64,000 nt of DNA, taken from Syncephalis fuscata S228 (taxonomy: Eukaryota; Fungi; Zoopagomycota). The notes under the pieces are model-generated. The model was not told the DNA's origin. It did no database searches and worked only from the letters and a program-made list of their open reading frames with translations. The stretch is taken from positions 62,001 through 126,000 of the forward strand of contig JAHLTZ010000016.1 in the NCBI GenBank assembly GCA_025786725.1. Direction: 5' to 3'. Made by a program: the position numbers and the translations under genes. Within the stretch, counting starts at the first letter, position 1, and each line of letters opens with the position of its first letter. Below, in pieces: positions 18,272-64,000 of the stretch.

Positions 18272-18898
18272 TTAGCAACTAATGACGCGATCATGCTTAG
18301 CAATAACTTTTTTGCCATCAGAAGATACAAAAGCTTCATACTCATGCATTGGAAGAGATACGAGAAACTTCCATGCAGGCTCAATAGATATATCCTCAAC
18401 ATGATAATATGTTTTTTCGCCAAATGCACGTTTAGTGCGGTCAGGATTAGTAAAACTTTCTGTTTGCATATCCTCAATGGACTGTTCTCGTCTGTCACCT
18501 TCTACAAGTTGAATATCAGCTGGATCTTGGCCAAGATGACCGGCAAGTGTTTTAAAGGCATCACGGATGGATACATATCGTGGCGATGCCAGACTGGTGG
18601 CAATGTCTCCGTGGAAAAATCTATCCTCATATGTACATACATGATTGTTTCTGTCAACGTGTACCCGAATGCTAGTATTCTCAATAGGTGTCCCATTTAG
18701 CACCTGTTTTAAATCTACATGGGTTACATCCATTCCACTTGACTTGTAATGGCTTAGTACAATGTAGTCATCCTGTTTAACGCCAAGTATTTCATGCGTA
18801 AAAGCCAAAGCTACATCCAATGGACTTCCGGCCGATGCAAATCGCGCACCATCTCTTTGAAGCGTCTCCGAGGTGACGGCAGTTTCGTATTTAACCAT
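18272..18898 (-). CDS. Stand-alone fungalysin (M36)-type propeptide protein (FTP + PepSY-like); no catalytic domain
   Basis: SHYKSSGMDVTHVDLKQVLNGTPIENTSIRVHVDRNNHV (FTP-like) and YEAFVSSDGKKVIAKHDRV (prodomain end); stop follows; no HEXXH. Confidence 0.7.
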   Translation of the reverse strand: MVKYETAVTSETLQRDGARFASAGSPLDVALAFTHEILGVKQDDYIVLSHYKSSGMDVTHVDLKQVLNGTPIENTSIRVHVDRNNHVCTYEDRFFHGDIATSLASPRYVSIRDAFKTLAGHLGQDPADIQLVEGDRREQSIEDMQTESFTNPDRTKRAFGEKTYYHVEDISIEPAWKFLVSLPMHEYEAFVSSDGKKVIAKHDRVISC

Positions 18899-19624
18899 TT
18901 TGTAAACTTGAATGAGAGTAGAAATGAAAATAAAAAAATGACGTATAAAGCCGACGAATTGATCTAATAGGAGCAGAGTGAATAAGGCCTAAATTTAATT
19001 TGTGCTGGCCTTATTGAAGTATTGTTTAATCAGCAACAGCCACCTGTTTTTTCTATTGGCTTAAGCAGGTAAAATGATGACATCATTACTCATTTTAGCA
19101 GCTTTTAGTAGGATGCCAAAGGGCATTTGAATACAGGATAATTCTGAATCCATTACTCTTTGTTTACAGTAAAGTGACAATCAAGCAAAACACAATGATA
19201 GACTATCTGATAAATCTGGAATTAATTTAATAGTTTACATTTCTGGTTTAAATAGCGACGTTTAATAAATACTAAAACAGCGCTGACCTTATAACAACAC
19301 GGCTTGATGACTATTAATCAATTATAGTTTGTATTTGTCAAGTCTGCCATCATCTAGTAATAACTAACTAATAACTTTGGATAGTCTGTATATAGTATAT
19401 AAACTACAGTTCGGCATGGGTATAGAAAATGATGCTATAATAGCTTGTATGTAGATGGCACCTCTACTTTAATTGAGGCCTTATTGCGAATATACCAATG
19501 CTAATGCCTTTTCATTGTAGTGATAGCATGCTATTACCAAATAAAATGCACTAATTTGATCCTTTAATTGTAAGATATCCACACAAATTGCTCGCATAAA
19601 CAGTTTCCTATTGATATACCTAGT

Positions 19625-19711
19625 GCACTGATGATATTCACTGGTGTGGATAGCGGGCTTCAAACCCGTTGGCGATTTGTTTCGCAGCGGTTCGATTCCG
19701 CCTTCGGTGCG
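19625..19711 (+). tRNA. tRNA-Sec (UCA), eukaryotic 9/4 fold
   Basis: Acceptor GCACTGATG/CTTCGGTGC (9 positions incl. U:U), 6-bp D stem with TGGT loop, 6-bp anticodon stem with CTTCAAA loop, long variable arm, 4-bp T stem GCGG/CCGC, G discriminator. Confidence 0.92.
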
Positions 19712-20235
19712 TAGCATGTCCTCATGCGCACGCTGCAAGTGTAGTAAGTTGTTAGTGTTTTGAACGATATATCCGACTATTGGATCCCTATTACAGACAC
19801 AGTTCATGTCTGTTTTTTAAACACCCCTTAGCTCATGCCCAGTTTAAAAACGCTAATGCATCGCATGCTGCGATTTAAGCCATTAGCAGAAATAGCGTAA
19901 TATGTTTTGGATAATAAAATGATATTTTATTAAATAAACGCGTATGTTTTATACTGTTTAATTAAAATATGAAGCCAGTATTTATTCGATGACGGATATA
20001 ATTTGCCACACATTTATCTGTCGGTCAGCATTGGTTAGTTGGCTGATGATTATATCCGAATTACATTTGGTCAGTAAATGGTAAAATAATAGTCCGATAC
20101 GTGTGAATATCTTCATACTTAAACCGTGCACAGACAACATTGTATTCTCATGGAGCAATGAAATAGCAAAGCGATTGTGCTGGAGAGAATTGCCATCAAC
20201 TATCGTAGTATTCAATTACTAGTATTTCTATAATC

Positions 20236-21609
20236 ATGCTTTTTTACAACTTGTCTCATGAACTGCTTGTATTGATATTTTTGCAATTGGATATTAAGTC
20301 ATTATTTGCATTTGCAAAAACTAGCAGCAGTTTATTTTATAGTATAATAGAGGACGATATTTTATGGAAGTGCATCTACAAGCAAACTTTTTTCTTTAAT
20401 CGCTGCGAGCAAGAGTTTTATACAAAGTTAAAATCTTTTCTGGATGCATCAAATACAAGTGGTCGAATAGCAATACATTTGCTACTTTATAGACGGCGCA
20501 TGGAGGTTGAAAATAACTGGTATAGCTGGCGATTTACAACAATAGATCAACAATGTCAATATACAAAAGATATAGACAGCTGTATTAGTCGGCTAACAAT
20601 GTGTATTGCTTTACAGCAACAACAACAACAACATCCTGTCTTATTAGATGACTATGCATCACCCGTAGATATTTCAAAACTAAACACACTATCAAATAAG
20701 CGGCTAAACTCATTTATAAAAACAATAGATAATAGCAAAAAAGAGTCTTTTAGAATCGAGAAGCTGCATTCTACAGCAGTATTTGTTTTTAGTAAAATGA
20801 TAATTCAACAAAAAACTGGAATAAGCTTGAAGCTTCTTACATGGAAAAGCGACTGCTGCACTTTTATTAGTGCAATTAATTTAGACAAATCATTTCAGCT
20901 ATTAGATGTGTTTGATAATTGGATACTGGTCGGAGAAACTAAGCCTGGTGATGCTTTAGTTATTTACAAAATATGCAACCTAATTACTGGAACAACTACT
21001 AGCAGCTTTATTTTTGATAGAAACGCCACCTGCCATTTACAAGCAGCTACACAGTGCAGTGTTTGTATTTATACTGTCACACCACTTGCAAATGGCCAAT
21101 CTGCAAACTGGGAATTGTGGCGAGTTGGCAGAGATAGTCACAAGGAATGTATAAACCATGGATCTATTGCTTTGCCATCCACAGGTGGATATCGATTAGT
21201 TTTGACACGAAGGATTGACAATCAAAGCGTGCTATTACAATTTTGGTCTGGTGGAATTATCGGCGAAGACTGTTATATGACTTTTCACACTCTGGGTAAA
21301 CAATCTATTTCTTGGGGTAGATTGCTGGATGGTAGCATTATAATAGCAATTTTATGCAAGAAGGGCGTTGTTTTTGTAGATGGAGCTGGCGACGCCTGTA
21401 TTGTAGTAAATATTGTTGATGGCGCGACATTGCGAAGCTTAAAATTTTCAAAAAAGTGCTATATAAAACTTAGAATTGGCGCTATCGTTCAAGTATACCA
21501 GTACGATGAACGACGGGCCATTTATACAATAGATTTATCTTCAGGAGCTCAAAGACAATCAATTTGCACTGAAAATCCGATTGATTTTATTCAGCGTGCG
21601 TTAATATGA
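20236..21609 (+). CDS. F-box protein with divergent beta-rich C-terminus
   Basis: N-terminal LSHELLVLIFLQLDIKSLFAFAKTSSSLF...DDILWK F-box pattern; intronless 457 aa. Confidence 0.8.
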   Translation: MLFYNLSHELLVLIFLQLDIKSLFAFAKTSSSLFYSIIEDDILWKCIYKQTFFFNRCEQEFYTKLKSFLDASNTSGRIAIHLLLYRRRMEVENNWYSWRFTTIDQQCQYTKDIDSCISRLTMCIALQQQQQQHPVLLDDYASPVDISKLNTLSNKRLNSFIKTIDNSKKESFRIEKLHSTAVFVFSKMIIQQKTGISLKLLTWKSDCCTFISAINLDKSFQLLDVFDNWILVGETKPGDALVIYKICNLITGTTTSSFIFDRNATCHLQAATQCSVCIYTVTPLANGQSANWELWRVGRDSHKECINHGSIALPSTGGYRLVLTRRIDNQSVLLQFWSGGIIGEDCYMTFHTLGKQSISWGRLLDGSIIIAILCKKGVVFVDGAGDACIVVNIVDGATLRSLKFSKKCYIKLRIGAIVQVYQYDERRAIYTIDLSSGAQRQSICTENPIDFIQRALI

Positions 21610-22785
21610 AATGTAATTGGACGATTTGGAGAAATGCTCAAGTAGTAATGAGCAGAAGCGCTCTGCCTCTTGGACAAAAATAGCATGACCGCATACTCTA
21701 AAAACTTCCAAACGTGCTTTCAAATACTTTGCAAGAAATTCCGAATTGGAGGCAGCAATGATGGCATCTTGGTCGCCAGTGCATACCAATACTGGGAAAC
21801 GGGCGTGTAAGATCCGCTGAAGACCTTCGTTGCAAAGATAATGGTGTTCTACAGCCCAAAGTTGTCTTTCGTAGCCTTCGGGTGTCTGTGGTTTACTGCT
21901 TGACAAAGCGTTACGGAAAAGCTGTGATTAAACGTTGTTAGTAGTGTTGCTGTGTATTGCTAAGTAATATACTGTACATTGGTTATAAAGTCGCGATTGG
22001 TTTGCCTGGGATTGTACTTGTTTGGTGCATCCAGCCAAACCTTGGGATATTCTATTTGAAGCATTTTAGCCTCTTGTTCAGGATTCATTGGTTCTAGCTT
22101 TCGTGGAAGTGCTCCCGGAACCTAATGATATTGTATTGAAAATAAAATAAAAATTAGTTACCCATGCATTAGAAATAGTATATAGCATACTTACTGGAGT
22201 TGGCTGCCACTTGGCCGTAGTGCTCACTAGGCATAGTGATTTAATGTAGCTGGGATAGTCGCTAGCCAGCTGCATTGCAATCATGCCGCCCATGCTGACC
22301 CGATAACATGCACGTTTGATTTCCATCCTAAATGATTCAAAAGTTGTATGGTGTCTTCAGACATATCTTTAACGCTATAAGAGTATATAACAGCAGCATA
22401 ATTATTTAATGTTTTACAAGCTGTTTAAAATAATCTTACACGTAGTTGCCTTGGGGTACATCTAATATTACTTGGTTAGTATGCTATTAGTTCTATAATT
22501 TTATCATAGATGTTTACCAGAATGGCCTACACCGCGATTATCGATCGTTAACACCTGGTATCCTCGTTGCGCCAAGAATTGTGCCTCTATATTCCATGCT
22601 TCACGAGAGTTGTTTAAGCCTGCACGTCTGGTTAGCACTGTTCGTTGTATGACATTGAGTGGCTAAGTGTTCGTACCAGAAAGAAACACAACATGTTGTG
22701 CTCCCGTGCCATGCAACTCGTATGCTATTTGAACCAGTCTTTTGGTACAACGGTCCATGACCTTGAATACTCCTTGTACTGGCAT
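21601..22785 (-). CDS. Alpha/beta hydrolase, multi-exon (apparent 1-nt deletion near 22300)
   Basis: IAYELHGTG, DNRGVGHS, HVIG-VSMGGMIA nucleophile elbow, GDQD, CGH. Confidence 0.85.
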
Positions 22786-41212: not shown

Positions 41213-44172
41213 TCATCGTCGACTAACATTACGTGTAACACCTAATGGATCACCGTCATCATCGTCATTGTCGTCATTCTTGTTATCTAGTATTGATTCA
41301 GTAACATTTAGTGTTGTAGTAAGTGGAGCCACTAATTCAGTATGATTGATAGGTGATGTAGGCAATGAATTCGTTCTATCTTCTCGCTTTCTACTCGTTG
41401 TACTACTACTACTACCAACTCGGAATGGACTATGACTATGACTAGCACTATTATTAGTACTACTAATACTCGTGTTCCGACTTGATGTATGGCTTTTAGT
41501 AATGATCCGGGCGTTGTGGTGGTTGGTGGTGGCGATTTAGTTGATCTATTAGCTGATGTAGTTAGAATATCTGCGGCAAATGGATCTCTTATATAGGCCA
41601 GTTCTTCTGGTGACTGATTAGATACAGGTTGGGCTGACCATCCCATAGTAGATAATTTATCGGTAATTAACGCTTCATCTCCATTATCTACTGAATATGG
41701 ATGATAGTCGCTATTACTATGGCCATTAGATGTAGTGGGTGCGGCATCAGTATCAATGTGTAATGGACTAGTGACACCTCTTATTGATATCATGGGTTTA
41801 CCGATAGCTGTATCATTAGGTAGTGGACTGGCTGTTAATGTGCTGTTAGCATTCGTATTACCATTAACAGGCAGTCCATTACTGAATACAGATACAACGC
41901 CGGCCATGGCTGCCGATACAGTGGCCATGGCTGCTGCAGATCGTGGTCTATTAGTATCAGCTGTCATCGCCTCCTCATCAACAACACCATTCACCTCTTC
42001 ATCTCGTCGAGCAAACAAACTGGCCCAGTATTTAAGATAGTTAGTATCAGGCAGCACAACACCTTCATCCATCTCTTCATCTCGCTTCATATCGTAGATA
42101 TCATTAATAAACTCTTCACGTCGTAGATCTAGATAGGGCCATACAGAATAGGTGCTATCACGCACTAGATTGCGTCGTTCTCGTTCCGTATTACACAAAA
42201 AGGTACCAAACTGGCAGGCATAGGCATGATAGTGTAGAGCAATTAGGAATCGCTCATTAAATTCAAATCGCCATGGTGCTTGCGTCCATAATTGATAACA
42301 GCAATCAAGGAATTGGTGGAATACTGGCGATGTTTCGCGTACATGTGATGATTGTTGATGCAGACGAGATTGAATTGAACTAAGTGTCGCTTCAGCTGCT
42401 GATGATTGAGCACCGGCAGCTATTTGAAAGTCGCGTTCATGTGTAAGATGACCACACCGATCAGTAAATTTATGACCAAATGAACACCACTCCTTTTCAA
42501 CTAATACGGCAAATCCTTCAATAGTACGGTAATATGGATCAAGACATAGGGAAGAAAGGCCGGTGAGTTGTGCCGTACGATCCCATCCATCAGAACAGTG
42601 GACTAATACGTGGGCCCGATCATGGTGCACCGTACGTACAATATTGGTGACACCATCGAGTAGTAATTGGATATGCCGTAGCCAATTTGATTTAGATAGC
42701 TGTATCTTATTAACAATGCCATTAACATCGGACGAGCCTATAGCTATATCGGTGGGAGATTTAATACGACGACCCGTTAGTAAACGACAGCATGGACGTG
42801 CCCATATCCAAGCAACGCAGCAACAATCAAACATAGAGTCACAGAGGATGGCGTTAGAAGACCGATTTGTATAACGATTGGCGTAGGCTGTCGTATAAAT
42901 GTATAAAACAAAATATACAAAGCATAATGCCACAACTAAATAACAGATACAGCATCCATACAGTCACTTACCATCAGCAATCTTATTAAGACTATCACGC
43001 ATCACATGGATATTATCAATGCCTAAATAAAGTTTACGGCATTGGCGGTAATTTTCGGTATTTTCACTGCCTGCACCCATTGCTACATTGGCCATGGCAT
43101 TGGCGGTGGGACGGGCATCAATAATAAGATTACGGTTCTGTAAATTTGATGTAATGCCAGTTGATTCATCTCGTTCGCTTGTAAAAATGGCCTCTACCAA
43201 CTTTTCATCTTGAACTGATCGACTTTGTCGTAAACCGACCATAGGTTGACTAGATCGTGTAATAGTAGTCTATATTATATATTATATATGTATATTAGTT
43301 GCAATGTATTGTTATATTGTATTGTTATATTGTATCATATTTGTATTTACTATATTAACTGTATAACTTACCATAGTGGGTCGGTGTAGATAGGATAATA
43401 CGGGTATTCGGCCTTTACTACGGAATTTAGCTGCATGTTCAAGTGTGACATCGCTAATCTTATCTGGTACAACTAGAAAACTGGGATACGTTGGACAGAG
43501 CTAATTGAATAGATTAGAATCCAGTATTGGCTTTATAATATGACTTACTTCATAATTAACATTCTTTTCAGTAAATCTCCATTTATTAGATCGTGTGCCA
43601 ACACCCATACGTTTGTATTCGCGTGCTGGATCATATCGTGTCCAGCCTTCCTCTTTTGACCAACGAGGCGTTGGTTGATAGTAGAAGGCATGGAATTGGT
43701 CCAATTTTTCTACACTTACTTAGTCTAACCTCTATTGGATCTATCCAGTCATACTTACCAACACAGGTAAGCTTCTGCATAACTTCATAAACATCAATGG
43801 CTTTGCTTTCAGTGGTAAAGCTAAGTGTAACGAATAGAAAGTGATGGCAACGGATACGTAATGGATACAGACCATCGTTAGTGACAGGTTGGCGTTCAAC
43901 CGTATGTAATAATGGATACGGAATCTATGGTATAGATTAGCGCATTGTACCGCCACGGCCATCTCTAGTAAATACCCATAGTTCCTCTTTAGGCTGTCTG
44001 AAGATGAGGTGGTGCATCAAGACGTGTAGTGTACCTGTATACTGTTTGCTGCCTCGGTCCAGGCGAACATTCTCGACCTGATAAACAAAACATCGTGGCA
44101 TTAGTTTGGTTAGAACGCGTAAGCAGCACAACACCGCAAACTGTTCACCTTGGACATTTTGATGAGGTCCAT
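41213..44172 (-). CDS. YMR1: Myotubularin-family phosphoinositide 3-phosphatase, multi-exon (apparent 1-nt deletion near 41510)
   Basis: LCPTYP, FRSKGRIP, SSQPMVG, IIDARP, HCSDGWDRT catalytic motif, EKEWCSFGHKF; natural C-terminus ...DPLGVTRNVSRR* lies in a shifted frame. Confidence 0.92.
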
Positions 44173-45282
44173 GCTTAGTGTTATGTTGTGGAATGACTAT
44201 AGATTGGACCACAATATAGAAAGTAGTAAGATGTCGAAGTAAATGCAAAGTGTGGGTGTGTACGGGAATAATCGAATAGAAAGTGCGTGACCAAGTACAC
44301 TGTACTCGCGTGCAGGGGCAAACGAGTATGCTTAGAGGCGCGTGAAGGAGCAGCAAGTAATAGACGAAAGAGACGATAAGGATAAGCAAATGACGACGAT
44401 ACAGACGATGTCGTCAATAAATGGTTGCTGTTCAAGGGAGTTGAATAAGGGCGGAATAAGCAGAGATCAGCGTCACTGATTTAGGAGAGATACAGCCAAA
44501 AGAACAGTCTTTTCTAGATCAATGTCGTTACAGGTATTGGTATTACCGTATATAATGAATAAAGTAATATAATTAACTAGATACTTGGCTTGTTGGCTTA
44601 CTATAGATGGTTGTTGATACTTTTACTAATCTATCAGTGTCTAATGGTCGTATTTAGTTTAATATATATATGCATAAATGTGATATGACAATGTAATACT
44701 ACAATGTACTTGATGGTCACTAGTACTATTAAGCTGATGTAAATGCATAACAGTCTACTATATAGTTGTATATAAGTATTAGTAAATAGATATGGATACA
44801 TTAGCTATAGCAATTAAAAAATATTATATTAACAAATGGTAATAAGTGTCATTAGTAAAAAGTGTTTAGTATATTATTGTTTATTATATTATTAATAACA
44901 TTATTACCCCCGCTTAATCCATTTATAATATTAATATTGATGGATCACAAATAGCTACAAAGGCCTGTCATTAAATAACAACTACGTAATAAACACTGGT
45001 ATACCAAATGTACTCATATCGTTATCAGTTCGGACAATCAATACCAATAACGATGACATAAATGCTGTTTGGTTTAACAAGACTGTGTTCATCAGGGTGT
45101 GAATGACATTCAGTATTTACAAGGAATAAAATGTATTATTTTGTGTTGATCAGTGTTTACAGGTGTAATTAAGCAAAAAAATACTTACACCACCATTTAA
45201 TGGCACTTTTTTACGCATATAGCCGCTATATCGTTCGTTTTTTGAACAAAAAGTAAATATTCTGTTTAAAAACGCAGCAAAA

Positions 45283-45379
45283 TGCTCCCGGTGAGGATCG
45301 AACTCACGACATCCGCGTGACTTTGGTATAGTTTATATCCTATAAGCACGGCGCTCTAAACCAGCTGAGCTACGGGAGC
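45283..45379 (-). tRNA. tRNA-Ile(UAU) with 22-nt intron (45319-45340)
   Basis: GCTCCCGTAGCTCAGCTGGTTTAGAGCGCCGTGCTTATA-[intron]-ACGCGGATGTCGTGAGTTCGATCCTCACCGGGAGCA. Confidence 0.93.
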
Positions 45380-45624: not shown

Positions 45625-47266
45625 CTATTTTTCTGATACAGGAGTAGTTCTACGTCGTCCTAGTAATTCGTCTTGTACTTGTTCTACCGTCTTGCCTTTA
45701 GTGTCGGTTAGGTAGAACCACATAAAGGCAAAGCCCAGTGCACCGGTGGCAACAAACACCAGGTAGCTGTAGGAGCGAAGGCCCTCGTTGACCAGTGGGA
45801 AAAGTAGGCCGACACAGAAATTACAAAGCCAGTTAATACCAATGGCTAATGAGGAGGCTGCGCCAACTGCTTTAGTTGGGAACATTTCAGGAAGAATGAG
45901 CCAGGGAATAGGCCCAAGTCCTACGGCGAATACGGCAACAAATAGAAAGACGGCGACAATAACGGCAACGTTTTGTTTGTATATACTACCTATTACAACA
46001 AGTACACTCATAAGTGTCATGCCAAATAGACTGACTAGCATAAGTGACTTGCGGCCAGCACGTTCAACTAGAGCCGATGAAACGAATGTCATACCGACAT
46101 TAAGTGCGCCAATGCCAACAGTGACACCGCGGGCTGTTTCGGCACCAAATGCACCGGTAAACATACTTGTGCTGTAAAAGAAAACGCTATTAATACCGGT
46201 GAGCTGTTGTAGCGCATGAATCATAAGGGCGATAAATGCTACTTTGCGCATTGGCGATCGGATAAGCTGGATAATATTCATTGACGTTTCGTCGGCAGCG
46301 GCAGCGTCCAAGTCTTCTTGCTTCTCAACGTGGCTACCGATGGATGTGCTTGAGGTGGGCACGTTCTTTTGCTGGCTGGCAATGATAGCGTCCATTTCTG
46401 CGCGTATATCATAGCCTTTACGTAGACGGGCCATGGCTTTTAAGCCAGCGTCGGTTTGGCCACTGGCGACAAGGCAGGCGGGTGATTCAACGCAAAAGCA
46501 TAGCATAATGCCTTGTACAACTGCTGGTATAATAGTGAGGCCAAGGAGTATACGCCAGCCAGATGCCGTACTCAATGCAAGACCAAGCAATTGAGCAATA
46601 AGAATACCAACGACAAGGAAAAGCTGGACCAGTGAACCAAACGTACCGCGTCGCTTAATAGTTGCTACTTCACCGACGTAGACGGGTGCAGTGACTGAAC
46701 CAATACCTGTGGCAATGCCTACGACAATACGGCCAACAATAAACTGAGCGGCTGTCGTACTGAGTGCCATAAGTAGACCGGCAACAATATAGATAGCGCT
46801 ACTGGCCAGCAGCGTATTGCGTCGTCCGATACGGTTCATCATAGGAGAAGCACTCAAGCCGCCGACAAGTCCGCCTAAGGCAAAGCTGCCAATTGCAAAT
46901 CCCCTATGGACGCGGAATAGCGATCATTGAAATAAAGTAATAAAGCATATACCCTTAATTAGCATAGTGTATGCCGTCTACATGTCTCTAGAGTTGCGCT
47001 TACCAAATACCACTGCTCATAGGAATACAGCCTGGAAAGGTGCCACTTTGCTGGCTTACAGCAACACTTTCACAGTTGCGGATTACAAGTTCGGGTGCAT
47101 TAGGTGCACCAATGTTGTAGCCATTGTTGAATGCTGACAACACAGCAGAGCTGGCGCAGAAAAAGGAGTACAGGGTCCAGGTCGCTTCGCGGGAATCAGT
47201 ATCCGTATCGTGCTTGGATACAGACGCCCTTTGGTCCGTACCACTAGCTTCAGCCTGGGTTGCCAT
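45625..47266 (-). CDS. MFS sugar porter, GLUT/SLC2A-like; 2 exons
   Basis: FNNGYNIG, IGRR, YVGEVA...RG, VESP, QQLTGINSVFFYST, GLGPIPW, TKGKT. Confidence 0.92.
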
Positions 47267-57329: not shown

Positions 57330-58371
57330 GCTAATGCAGGAATACGGAAATGCTAATGAGAAATGCTTCAAGAATATGCTTAAAGGTGAGTATGCTACGG
57401 GAAAGAAAAGAAAGTGCACCAAGGGATGACAATAGTTTGGCATAGCGGGTTTAGAAATTAGTGGCACGGCAAAGGATACACGCAAAGGTATAATGTAAAT
57501 ATGTCTATTTTTAGATAAATAGCATTTATAATAAAAGCTACAAATACCTGTATAATACTCGATTATCATAAAGGTATTATTTTGCACGCTCATATCCTCC
57601 ATCCAACTATATCGTTCATATTGTATACTGCTAGTATTATAGATCATTATAAGTTATACCAACTATACTCTATTCAGTATATGTTTCAATCCATTTTAAT
57701 TAATCCAGTTTGTGAGTTGTACACTCAGCCCAACAATTATTTATATTATTATACATTTTGATAGCTGCATGCTACTTTTAGGGATTGTACATTTATTGTT
57801 ATATATATATATTCGTTGCAGAGTCTGAATCATTGGTTTATTTTCTTTATTAAACTATCCATGCAATAGTAACGTATTGTTTTACAGCTACTCGCGCATA
57901 ACGACTAGTTAATACATATTAACAATGGATTACTAAATAGACTGAGCTACTTAGTATGTTGTTTATAATCAAAAAGTACAACTAATATAATGGAGCGTGA
58001 AAAGTATATTAGGTAGTGGTACATGTGCAACACGTTGCAAAGTATCTTATTAGTTTTAAAGTTTGCTAGTCACTGGATGCAAATCAATCATGGTCATAAA
58101 GTAGTAGGTTGATTACATATGATAAAAATAAATTGGCGTGTCTATTACTGAAAATTTGCATAGCTGAATCGATACAATCAAATGCAGAACTGGTAATGGA
58201 ATAATAAAATTTATTGATTAAAGGGGAGTAGACCGGGATATTGGCTGAGATTAGTATATGCCTGAATTAAACGGCAGTCGTCCAATAATCTTGATTTTTA
58301 AGTGTATATCTAGAATCTCTAGGACTAGCTGTCCAATTATGATTTCAATGTCAATGTCTTGAAACTACTGG

Positions 58372-60831
58372 TTATTCTGTGTTTATAATATAGGCAACCA
58401 TGCCATATAATTAGCATATAGATCATAATGGTTAATGCGACTTACCATCTATAATATAAATCATTAAGTATCCAATGGATAATGCATGTTTAGTGTTTAG
58501 TTAATTGGTATTCAATTCTACTTACCAACTGCTGGTAAAGGTTATTAGATACGGGGTATATTATATATGTTTAGTACATAAATGCTTATATGTAATCATA
58601 CTTACTCTCTATTAATGCAAGTGGTTAAGCACACAGTGCATGGTATATATTTAGCATATATTTAGACAGTGTATAATGCCACTTACTCTCTATTAGTACA
58701 AGTGATTAAATACAGCATATGACATATTTTTAGTGAATAGCTAATTAATATACAATAATATTTACCAACTATCAATATAGGTGATTTAACACACAGTGTA
58801 TGGCATATGCTTAGTTCATGGTTGATCAGTATATAATGCTACTTACTAACTAATGATTCAAGTTATTAAACACATGGTGTGTGGGATATAATTAGCGCTT
58901 GGTTGGTTAACATGAAATCCCACTTACACTCTATTAACACAGGTTATTAAAAATGCAGTGTACGACATATATTTAGTATATTGCTGATTAGTATACAATT
59001 TTACTTACCGTCTAATAATGAAAGTTGTTAAATAAAGGGTATATGGCATATATTTAATTTGTAGCTAATTAATATATAATATTACTTACCAACTAATCGT
59101 ATACATTATTAAGCATAAGAAAAAGAATATGTAATTAGTTTAGTGCATAGATGGTTAGTATACAATGCCACTTACATTCTATTAGCACAAGTTGTTAGAC
59201 ATAAGGTGCATGGTATATGTTTAGTGCATAGCTGGTTGATATAAAAGTTTACTTACGTTCTATTAACAAAGGTTGTTAAACATAAGATGCATGGAATAAG
59301 TTTAGCACATAGTAAAGCAATATATTGTTTCACTTACCAGCTATCAACGCAAATTATTAAACAGGCGGCGCATAGAAAACGCTTAGTGTATGATTAATTA
59401 ATATACAATACCACTTACTAACTAATGGTTCAAGTTGTTAAGCACACGGTATATGGCATATGTTTAATACATATCCAATTGATATATAATATTACTTACG
59501 ATCTATTAAAGCAATTTATTAAACACACAGTGTATGGGATATATTTAGTACATAGTTGGTTGATATACAATGTCACTTACCAGCTAATGATGCAATTTAT
59601 TAAATATTCAGTGTATAAATATATTTAGTATGTAGCTAATCAATATACGATGTTACTTACCAACTATTAGCACAAGTAATTAGACATAAGGGAAATGGTA
59701 TATGTTTAGTACATAGTTGCTTGGTATGAAATGTCACTTACGCTCTATTAACACATTAAACACAAAGCAAAGGCACATGTTTAGCGTATAGCTTATTAGC
59801 ATACAATGGCACTTACTGGCTATTAACAAAAGTTATTAAACATACCGTGTACAACATATTTTTAGCGCATAATGAAGTGATATGTAGCACCACTTACCAG
59901 CTATTAGCACAGATTATAAAACACAAGATGCATGGAAATAGTTAGTGCATATTTGATTGATATATAATATTGCTTACCAACTAATAGTTGGAGTTATTAT
60001 ATAAAAATGCACGGCATACGTTTAGTATATAGTTGGTCAGTATACAATGCCACTTACTAGCTATTAACAAGTTATTAAATACACGTGTGCATCATACTTT
60101 TAGTGCACAGCAAAGTAATATGTAATACCACTTACCCCCTATTTATACAAATGATTAAATACACGCGCATGAAAAATGTTTAATGTATATCCGAGTAATA
60201 TGTGATGCCACTTACTAACTAATGATTCAAGTTATTAGACACAAAATGCACAGTATGTTTTAATGCATATCTGATTAATAGACAATATCACCTACGCTCT
60301 ATCGACATAAGTTGTTAAATACACAGCGCATGACATATATTTAGCATATATTTAGCTAATTTGCAATGCCACTCACGTTCTGTCACTACAAGTTATTAAG
60401 CAAGGTGCATGAAAGACGATTAGTGCATAGTCGATTAATATACGATGCCACTTACCAACTAATGGTTTAAGTTATTAAAAATATATTGCATGACAGGTGT
60501 TTAATACGTAGTTGGTCAATATACAATGCCACTTACGGTCTATTAATGTAAATACAGCATATTAGTATTTCTGATTAATAATTGGTTTGTTCTTTTATAT
60601 TAAGTTTACCTTGAGATGTTAGATCTAATTTCAGCAATTTACATTACAAAACAATGTTTATCATGTTCATCATGTGTATGGCAATCTACATTGAGCATTG
60701 GAACAATGGTTCAAAATCACAACTTACCGACTAGTATCGCCATTAGTTAGCCATAATGTTAATGAGTATATTAATTTACGTATTTATTGCAGTTGTAACA
60801 TACCACGGATAAGGGCCGGCACAGTTTCCAT
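58372..60831 (-). CDS. Predicted micro-exon gene: exons 60831-60804, 60730-60728, 60624-60610, twenty-seven 3-nt exons (60539 down to 58446), 58376-58372; product METVPALIRVDLTSQDLEQLRAIAAKLADLTEQFDEFIEKIDE
   Basis: Every repeat unit has YAG-NNN-GT; in-order phase-1 join is stop-free, amphipathic and ends GAA-TAA at the next acceptor; no transcript evidence available. Confidence 0.75.
58441..60545. repeat. Diverged ~81-bp tandem array, 27 units (intron + 3-nt exon)
   Basis: (ac)ttac-NNN-cta anchor recurs every 75-86 bp with shared gttattaa, cac, tttagt and tacaat blocks. Confidence 0.95.
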
Positions 60832-63800
60832 TATAATTGTATTGATTACAAAAGCTATAATGAGCGGCGCAAACGACGGCTATAGAAAGCTTTGTGTTGA
60901 TACGACTTGTTAAAACAAGCAAACAAATGAAAAATAGAACGTGGCGATGATACCGCTGGTTATTTGTGTGTATCGAGCGGGCTATTTAAATCTGTGGTTA
61001 TACTGGGATATCAGTATATTGTAGTGTGCGGAATGTATTATCAATACTCAATGTAACCAATAAAGCACAGACAGTTGGTGGATTAAAGCACGTGCATATC
61101 GATAAATCAATGGCGCGATAATGTACTGCCAAGCCCTTATATCGTTTTTTTCTTTTACGCAAATGACGCGGCCCTATTAGCATCCAGTACGCATGTGGTA
61201 GGAATCCACCCATTGAGTTTTACAATTTTGTTACACAATTCGACTATGAAACGCAAACTGAATATATCAATTCCACGGAAAAAGGGATAATGTACCGCTG
61301 TGCCTTTGTTGCGTTTTCACCGATAAAATCAGTCTTCATTGTCTGCACGTATTTCGACTGTGCTTAGCATCGATGCAACAGTAGCGATAGTGCATTAAAC
61401 TGGTATTTTTTTTACAAATATGCACTGCTGTGTGTAAAGTAGTCATAGGCCATTAAATGGATGAACCAATCAGTATTTTTCATGATTTAATACATATTGA
61501 TATTGGGTTGGCTATAGGAACAAACAGTTCGTTTTAGCACTGTACCACCAGCTGTCGATACCAGCTCTATTTTTAACAATTAATTGATGGCTTCTGTATA
61601 ACACAGTTTTAATAGTAAAGTATTAAATTTATGTATGGATGCATCAATTGTTTTAACACAGTGTAAAAATACTAGACTGACCTGTCGGGTCGTCTCAGTT
61701 GTATATAATCAATCAAGAGTGTACAGGAGCAATGCAGGTTATATCAAGTTTTTTTTGAAAGCTAGAAAGCAGTCTTTATTAAGGCAAACAATAACATAAA
61801 GGTAAGACTTGTTTTAACTTGCTGCAGCCTCGACAATTCAACGAGGTGGTCGATTTTAAGCATGGGTATGAACGGAGACTGCGTTGTAAGGTAGGATGTA
61901 GCAATGAGTTACACCAATAAGCGTTTGCCGCCTAAAGATTGGTCCGGTAGACATCGGGTTCAGAGCCTCATTGACTTAGAAGGCAAGACTAGTAGTTGAG
62001 CTAGCATTACACCCTTTTGATGTCATAGCATTTTTTTTTCAAAAACCAGTGTTAATTAAGGGCATATCAGACAATGGCAGTCCCATTGTATAATGACTGA
62101 TTTGGGAATAACTCGATGAAGGTGGTTTATAATAGCTGCACACATCAAGATTGCACTAGACGAACGTGGAATCAGAATTTAGCAATGGTAAATCTCATCT
62201 ATATTCTTATCAGTATGCAAATCAATGACAACATACTATCATAGCCTTGAATGTTGAAATTCTTTATTAGAGCTTTTATTTCTTGGATTCTATGTTGTTA
62301 TAATTGCGTGCAAACTACTACACAGGCGGCACGCAAGCAATACAAATATGCACACGCAATCATCTTTTTTAGCAAAGCATTGATTTGCACGCTGCACTAT
62401 TTTATTGATATTAACAGTTTTGTGGCGCTGGCTTATTTGTGGTAATTATATCGATTGTAAACAGCAGAATCATGCATACTGCACATCCGTTCTGATTAGT
62501 ACTTGCTAAAACGACATTTTTGTCGCAGAAAACATGTTGCTATCGAAATAGATAGGTGTTGTGTTATTTTAACAAGCCTACCGATCATATAGATTTGCCA
62601 TAATTGCTATTATTTGAGAAAAAATCATTTTAACCACCATCGCTCACCACACTATCGTAATTTGTACACTTTCAAATAGTGTGAAATCGAAATGTTATGA
62701 CAAGTATAAATATCTATGCTATTGTCAAATCAGTCCGGACTGGACTGGAGGTTGTTTGAACAGCATAGATCAACTGTAATTATATTACAAATGCAAATTT
62801 GTTATAAAATCAAATATTCACAATACATAGCATGAAAGACAAGCGCTCATAATTGCTTTTTGGCGCCTTAAACTCATTCACTACTAATACGCTGCAATGA
62901 TTACGTAACATACTCTTAATTTATTGTTTACTCAATAGGTAGGCTTTACAAACCGACTTTCATCCTATATGTACCAACAAAGAACGATAACAACTATATT
63001 ACGTCGCCGTATCAAAAATCAATCTATTCCATGTGATATTTATGTCATTGATATGTTGGAAATGCATTGCGTTTTCTATTCTCGCACTTTTTGTGTGCTT
63101 ATCTTATCACACCTAATAAAAACCAAGAAATTACTCGTCAAGCTCGATTGTGTTGTCCAATTCTTAAATACGGCTAATGGTGCTAATAAACGTTTGTTGT
63201 AAGTTACCCGTTTAATTGCTGTTACTGTCTGTACACTGTATTAACAACTCAATAGGAATACAATATGCGAGTAAAACTGCGCTTTGGCACTTTTAGCAAT
63301 ATGGCAATGGGAAGCATATACTAAACGCAGCTAATTATTTGAGCCTCTATTAAATTTCCATATTTATTAAGCATAGGACTGAGCGGTGAGTGACATTAAT
63401 CATTGTTCATGTAATTTGTTCTATATAATCCGTATTTACTTGTCTATTATATATAATCAATATTGCTGTCTGTTTATTATTAAATAGTTTTCATGGATGT
63501 CAATCCATGTCGTTCATCTTATCATCGTGCATACTGTGACTCCATCACTAGTATTCACGCATTCTACTTGGTGATTCGTATCATTTGAGATTATTCATAA
63601 TTTATTGCCAAAACACTATTGATAAGCATATTTAGAAGCACATTCACAACCAAGAGAATAGTAATTAACTTCATGCTTATCAATTAATTAACGTGATTGT
63701 TTCATGTGGACAATCCGCACAAAAATATCAGTCCTTGGATCTCATTTTCTCGTTCACACTTCTCTTTCGCTTTCTCTTATATGCACACTTTACACTTCAG

Positions 63801-64000
63801 ATCTCTACATATACCAAAATACAGCTGTACTTTGGGTTACTACAGATCCAGTCTGATTTTTGCATTGTTTCCAAGATCACCGATCGCCAATAAACAACGC
63901 TCTTCACCTGTTCTCTCTTTCTCTTTCTATTACTTTATTGGGCTCATCGTTAAGTAGTGACATTCTGTCAAAAATACCATTTAATTTAGGTAAGTTTGGT

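Follow-up and report, generated by a model that had tools for sequence, protein, structure and literature searches.

A selenocysteine tRNA (tRNA-Sec) gene of the eukaryotic type has been identified in the genome of the fungus Syncephalis fuscata (Zoopagomycota, Zoopagomycotina, Zoopagales, Piptocephalidaceae). The gene lies on the forward strand at positions 19625-19711 of the stretch of 64,000 nucleotides considered in the current analysis, which is referred to as the window (assembly GCA_025786725.1, contig JAHLTZ010000016.1, bases 62001-126000). It is confirmed as a genuine full-length gene. It is likely to be a functional nuclear tRNA-Sec gene, from which we infer real use of selenocysteine (Sec) by S. 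fuscata.

The tRNA-Sec gene and its structure

The region has been called as tRNA-SeC with the anticodon tca by ARAGORN. The Rfam family RF01852 (tRNA-Sec) has been assigned to positions 19625-19710 over the full length of the model (1-91) with a score of 76.9 bits (E-value 4.8e-14), the gathering score of this family being 47. The presence of tRNA-Sec at this locus, which had been suggested by the original prediction, is borne out by both methods. ARAGORN by itself is known to yield false tRNA-Sec calls in fungi (PMC5330540), and hence it is the covariance-model score and the structure that carry weight. The segments of the gene, all on the forward strand, are as follows.

19625..19711, forward strand: tRNA-Sec gene of the eukaryotic 9/4 type, 87 nt, without encoded CCA (ARAGORN, Rfam, syntenic orthologues)
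19625..19633, forward strand: 5' strand of the acceptor stem, 9 bp, with its partner at 19702-19710 (Rfam alignment)
19636..19651, forward strand: D arm with a 6-bp stem and the 4-nt loop UGGU (Rfam alignment, pair counts)
19652..19670, forward strand: anticodon arm with a 6-bp stem and the 7-nt loop CUUCAAA, the anticodon UCA being at 19660-19662 (ARAGORN, Rfam, pair counts)
19671..19686, forward strand: long variable arm, consisting of a stem of 4 bp and a loop of 6 nt (alignments, pair counts)
19687..19701, forward strand: T arm with a 4-bp stem and the loop UUCGAUU (Rfam alignment)
19702..19711, forward strand: 3' strand of the acceptor stem with the discriminator G73 after it, at 19711 (sequence, Rfam alignment)

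The acceptor stem is formed by bases 1-9 with 78-86, and its eighth pair is U:U (19632 with 19703). A connector of 2 nt is present, and the acceptor and T stems make up a helix of 13 bp that is split 9 + 4. The T loop together with the two preceding bases of the stem gives a consensus-like B box, GGTTCGATTCC. The S. fuscata RNA has a better fold than all of 200 shuffled sequences (200/200, z -3.7), and of the cloverleaf stems only the acceptor and D stems appear in the predicted fold. The minimum-energy fold of the orthologue from S. plumigaleata, described below, is exactly the 9/4 cloverleaf.

The gene is similar to the eukaryotic tRNA-Sec represented by RF01852 in the UCA anticodon, the 9 + 4 helix, a D stem of 6 bp closed by a loop of 4 nt, an anticodon stem of 6 bp, the long variable arm, G73, the U:U in eighth position of the acceptor stem and the lack of an encoded CCA. 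The human tRNA[Ser]Sec, the type example, has these features too. The Syncephalis gene differs from the eukaryotic type in its variable arm, with a stem of 4 bp and a loop of 6 nt, and in having neither a conserved TATA-like element near -30 nor a T run close by. The hallmarks on which the original prediction was based (UCA, 9/4 arrangement, U:U pair, D stem, variable arm and G73) are all present, and its segmentation of the molecule is exact. The identity elements of seryl-tRNA synthetase, namely the long variable arm and G73, are found in the S. fuscata tRNA-Sec, and G73 is required for serylation (PMC5330540). The bacterial selC, which has been seen in contaminated assemblies of Dikarya, shares the UCA anticodon, the long variable arm and G73; however, it has an 8/5 fold and CCA is usually encoded, whereas the Syncephalis gene is of 9/4 type and is without CCA.

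Genomic setting and orthologous loci

The protein coding genes of the window are those of a fungus. An open reading frame on the reverse strand (45625-46857) is 100% identical to the 'monosaccharide transporter [Syncephalis fuscata]' encoded on an NCBI contig of 541,153 bp, and its next-best matches are from S. plumigaleata (80%), S. pseudoplumigaleata (76%) and Thamnocephalis (60%). The annotated genes include those for a DEAH helicase, catalase, mS26, a peptidase of family M28, Stk19, an alpha/beta hydrolase, GCN5L1, a type III glutamine synthetase, IQGAP, myotubularin, a sugar transporter and Snf7, which are ordinary fungal genes. The genome is thus fungal and is no contaminant; the suggestion of a fungal-type genome in the original prediction is upheld by the identical S. 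fuscata protein and the next-best matches in Zoopagales.

Two other regions of the window deserve mention. An intron-bearing tRNA gene is found at 45283-45379 on the reverse strand (Rfam, 54.4 bits), which is missed by ARAGORN in its bacterial mode; it is a candidate tRNA-Ile whose anticodon loop appears to read UAU. The region 57650-64000 comprises about 6 kb of AT-rich DNA (33-35% G+C) in which neither an open reading frame longer than 90 aa nor an annotated gene is seen.

The single-exon neighbours of tRNA-Sec have been used as homology seeds for finding the corresponding loci in related fungi. The neighbours considered are as follows.

18272..18898, reverse strand: FTP-propeptide protein P0124, 208 aa, the upstream neighbour, used as the seed for finding the sister locus
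20236..21609, forward strand: F-box open reading frame, 457 aa, the syntenic anchor on the downstream side of tRNA-Sec (Pfam F-box-like)
21601..22785, reverse strand: alpha/beta-hydrolase gene, spliced, 276 aa, the second syntenic anchor (NCBI annotation)

The orthologue of P0124 in S. plumigaleata shares 66% identity with it, and the locus so obtained (L004) encodes a tRNA-Sec at L004:12710-12796 on the forward strand, called by ARAGORN and scoring 74.7 bits in Rfam. The gene order is the same as in the window, with tRNA-Sec followed by the F-box gene on the forward and the hydrolase gene on the reverse strand; the order and strand of the hydrolase gene are alike in L004 and in a further locus, L127. 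The F-box open reading frame, which is missing from the NCBI record of S. fuscata, shares 37% identity over 435 aa with its S. plumigaleata counterpart (L004:13131-14450, E-value 8e-106). A word-index protein search with the S. fuscata F-box sequence gave no match, which is an artefact of sensitivity since an orthologue of 37% identity exists.

A profile made from the S. fuscata and S. plumigaleata F-box proteins has been searched against 1.84 billion representatives. This search revealed a metagenome contig (L129, with raw reads in SRR23978794, and also L130) from an uncultured Syncephalis-like organism, whose FTP protein shares 78% identity with that of S. plumigaleata and 64% with that of S. 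fuscata. A tRNA-Sec is found upstream of the F-box homologue, as expected, at L129:1434-1520 with an Rfam score of 63.9 bits, and also at L130:155-241; that of L129 is missed by ARAGORN. The order of tRNA-Sec, F-box gene (forward) and hydrolase gene (reverse) is retained on these contigs as well. The profile also identifies the orthologue in S. pseudoplumigaleata (assembly GCA_003614755.1), whose contig stops within that gene, before the site where the tRNA would be expected. A more distant F-box match, P0130, was set aside, being located on a metagenome contig of 2.9 kb without a tRNA.

The loci are not entirely collinear. Between S. fuscata and S. plumigaleata, the FTP gene (18272-18898 of the window and L004:10001-10648) and the myotubularin gene (41332-44300 of the window and L001:13647-16470) are inverted relative to their neighbours, and S. 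plumigaleata has an additional gene of 275 aa between the FTP gene and tRNA-Sec. The F-box homologue of the metagenomic organism (L129:1963-2801) shifts frame around residue 80, and no match extends over the final third of the protein; local decay, the presence of an intron or an error of assembly could account for this.

These observations bear on the suggestion that the gene is a false positive, or that it is foreign and derives from a bacterium, from the host fungus or from some other eukaryote. The over-calling of tRNA-Sec by ARAGORN in fungi (PMC5330540) would favour a false positive, but the covariance-model score is about 30 bits above the gathering score. Against a foreign origin, the gene is embedded in a contig of 541 kb whose genes match Zoopagales best, and it is syntenic in the independently sequenced S. 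plumigaleata. A pattern of 43 nt to which all three Syncephalis variants conform had no match in 185,579 bacterial and archaeal species, represented by one genome each. Hence this explanation is already contradicted and its probability is negligible.

Conservation of the gene and its transcription signals

The three Syncephalis tRNAs differ from each other at 3, 5 and 6 of the 87 nt in the pairwise comparisons (93-97% identity). The flanking 200 bp share an identity of 0.50-0.56 among the three lineages, which is to be compared with 0.50-0.53 for shuffled sequence. All four of the substitutions in stems (4/4) keep the pairing. The first pair of the variable stem is G:C in S. fuscata and A:U in S. 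plumigaleata, a double change, and two C-to-U changes in stems of the L129 gene result in G:U pairs. The conservation of the tRNA while the flanks are at the level of shuffled sequence, together with the retained pairing, argues against a relic gene. As judged from these alignments, purifying selection has been shown to act on tRNA-Sec across the three lineages, and the conservation pattern is that of a working RNA gene as opposed to one in decay.

Metagenomes have also been scanned with a degenerate tRNA-Sec pattern, one that is unable to match the L129 variant. At least 120 matches were obtained, the best 40 of which are mostly bacterial tRNA-Sec of the 8/5 type. Among the matches listed, the only ones of eukaryotic type are three contigs (L037, L078 and L087) of one unrelated eukaryote. 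Their gene (L078:2339-2425, forward strand) is similar to that of Syncephalis in its 87 nt, the 9/4 arrangement and the U:U at the eighth acceptor pair; it differs at 12 stem pairs by double changes and in a variable stem of 5 bp with a 4-nt loop. Their source is no close relative of Syncephalis. None of the contigs inspected appeared to be of human origin, most of the 120 metagenome contigs having been read at the tRNA match only.

Pair counts have been made on four sequences, namely the three from Syncephalis and the metagenomic eukaryotic L078. The 9/4 structure has 95.7% of its cells paired, with double changes at 12 pairs; none of the 500 shuffles reached these values and the controls in which the structure was slid along the alignment had 37-51% of the cells paired. 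The T stem and the D stem are 100% paired, the latter with double changes at 3 pairs with respect to L078. The acceptor stem is paired in 86% of the cells, and most of its unpaired cells belong to the constant U:U, which is unpaired at the eighth position in all four sequences (4/4); the other pairs covary. The T loop of L129 reads UCUGAUU in place of UUCGAUU, with changes at the normally invariant positions 55 and 56. Since the T loop is altered and ARAGORN misses the gene, the L129 gene may be under weaker constraint in that lineage.

The transcription signals of tRNA-Sec appear to be unusual. In the window, the three ordinary tRNA genes (tRNA-Ala, tRNA-Arg and the intron-bearing tRNA; 3/3) have a TTTT within 11 nt of the 3' end and an AT-rich upstream region, whereas the first TTTT after tRNA-Sec is at +46 in S. 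fuscata (within 19712-19815) and, in S. plumigaleata, at about +140 (within L004:12797-12940). S. fuscata and S. plumigaleata both have a consensus-like B box, and that of L129 is altered through positions 55 and 56. No TATA-like element near -30 that is common to the three orthologues has been found in the alignments. The only flanking stretch common to the three lineages is given below.

19620..19624, forward strand: CTAGT directly 5' of the tRNA (-5 to -1; alignments)

S. plumigaleata (L004:12650-12700) and the metagenomic organism (L129:1375-1425) have in common a GC-rich block, located some 30-55 nt upstream of tRNA-Sec, which is absent in S. fuscata. It may represent the residual similarity of closer relatives, or a promoter element.

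In vertebrates, the tRNA-Sec genes are equipped with a TATA/PSE promoter upstream and with a nearby terminator. A poly-T motif has been mentioned for tRNA-Sec genes (PMC5330540). The absence of a T run close to the Syncephalis gene, the B-box changes of L129 and the conservation of CTAGT alone hint at a promoter that is upstream-driven or that departs from the standard polymerase III type. It may be speculated that the expression of this gene bypasses the usual internal promoter and terminator.

The apparently unusual transcription signals would also be compatible with the RNA having been put to some other use without Sec synthesis, as a UGA suppressor inserting serine or as a non-translational RNA, and the conservation described above shows that the gene has a function and not which one. 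However, everything that PSTK, SepSecS and eEFSec recognise in the molecule (the helix of 9/4 type, the D stem of 6 bp and the U:U pair) is kept, and would be superfluous for a plain suppressor. We know of no precedent for a tRNA-Sec turned into a suppressor or to another use, and such a role is considered very improbable.

Selenocysteine use in Syncephalis

None of the genes for SecS, PSTK, eEFSec, SBP2 and SPS2 is present among the genes of the 64-kb window and of the Syncephalis loci fetched for comparison, and no known selenoprotein family is represented among the annotated genes of the window. A search of the 64-kb window for SECIS elements gave no match at E-values up to 10. Fungal SECIS elements often go undetected (Mariotti et al. 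preprint, bioRxiv 10.1101/314781), which makes this negative result, covering 64 kb only, a weak one. Six-frame translations of the window, with an X at each TGA, have been compared with those of the sister loci (about 80 kb), resulting in 30 alignments. Among the 30, those checked that have a TGA shared by both species correspond to the tRNA genes or to antisense or off-frame readings of known genes, and revealed no candidate selenoprotein. The annotation, the SECIS search and the TGA screen agree with the original prediction, in which no selenoprotein had been noticed in the window.

Such a neighbourhood is compatible with a relic, in an organism that has recently lost its selenoproteins and Sec enzymes and whose tRNA gene is still undecayed. 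The lack of Sec enzymes, selenoprotein genes and SECIS in the window is consistent with this, as are the absence of a T run near the gene and the features of L129, with two changes at normally invariant positions of the T loop and an adjacent F-box gene that looks disrupted. On the other hand, the flanks are randomised and the F-box protein is down to 37% identity, yet the tRNA remains 93-97% identical, and every change in a stem is pair-preserving, one compensatory double change included. Published surveys, moreover, find that tRNA-Sec does not persist in genomes devoid of selenoproteins (PMC5330540). A relic is therefore considered unlikely. As tRNA-Sec is described as specific to genomes that contain selenoproteins (PMC5330540), this specificity and the selection seen in Syncephalis together favour Sec use.

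The steps of decoding proposed for S. fuscata follow from the established eukaryotic pathway. The transcript would be serylated by seryl-tRNA synthetase, which would recognise the long variable arm together with G73. PSTK, reading the D stem of 6 bp and the acceptor/T helix of 13 bp, would then phosphorylate the serine, and SepSecS would convert it to Sec with selenophosphate supplied by SPS2. The product would be delivered to UGA codons by eEFSec, with the SECIS in the 3' UTR of the mRNA bound by SBP2.

The occurrence of Sec in fungi has been surveyed before. In the 2018 preprint of Mariotti et al., eukaryotic Sec machinery was found in 5 of 1197 fungal genomes, and bona fide Sec machinery co-occurred with tRNA-Sec in this survey (bioRxiv 10.1101/314781). 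Nine Sec-using fungal species, seven of them Harpellales, had been published according to a review of 2023. These nine are Bifiguratus adelaidae, Gonapodya prolifera and seven Harpellales (Mariotti et al. 2019), and for them the Sec enzymes have been found along with selenoproteins, among which are SPS and SelenoH. Of the 137 early-diverging genomes considered by Amses et al. (2022), 11 were reported to have Sec, and these are unnamed in the main text. The literature is thus in agreement with the view of the original prediction that Sec has been retained by only a few of the early-diverging fungi. The searchable literature, whose scope excludes the final species lists of Mariotti et al. and Amses et al., contains no record of Sec use in Syncephalis, Piptocephalis, Zoopagales or Zoopagomycotina, and this fits the earlier suggestion of a lineage possibly unrecorded as Sec-using. 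The assemblies of S. fuscata and S. plumigaleata (GCA_025201365.1 for the latter), judged from their accession numbers, probably postdate the 2018 survey.

Syncephalis is similar to the nine Sec-using fungi in being early-diverging and in having a eukaryotic-type tRNA, and it shares the phylum Zoopagomycota with Harpellales. It is unlike them in its subphylum and order (Zoopagomycotina, Zoopagales) and in its mycoparasitic lifestyle. With the pathway proposed above, the genus Syncephalis would be one that keeps the Sec trait, within a subphylum for which the searchable literature yielded no such record. We regard the chances as about even that Syncephalis, and hence Zoopagomycotina, is a Sec-using lineage absent from the published lists, with an expression of tRNA-Sec that is perhaps unusual.

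Fungi had long been thought to be without selenocysteine, and the nine species named since 2019 include seven Harpellales of the insect gut. A tRNA-Sec conserved in three Syncephalis lineages points to a second subphylum of Zoopagomycota and to a contrasting, mycoparasitic lifestyle. If this is true, the Sec trait would have been present in the common ancestor of the two Zoopagomycota subphyla carrying Sec, more independent losses would have taken place, and the count and timing of the losses of Sec in fungi would be refined. Genes containing UGA are probably mis-annotated in the Syncephalis genomes. Syncephalis would also offer a culturable genus for the study of Sec decoding in fungi, including SECIS elements of the kind mostly missed by the standard tools.
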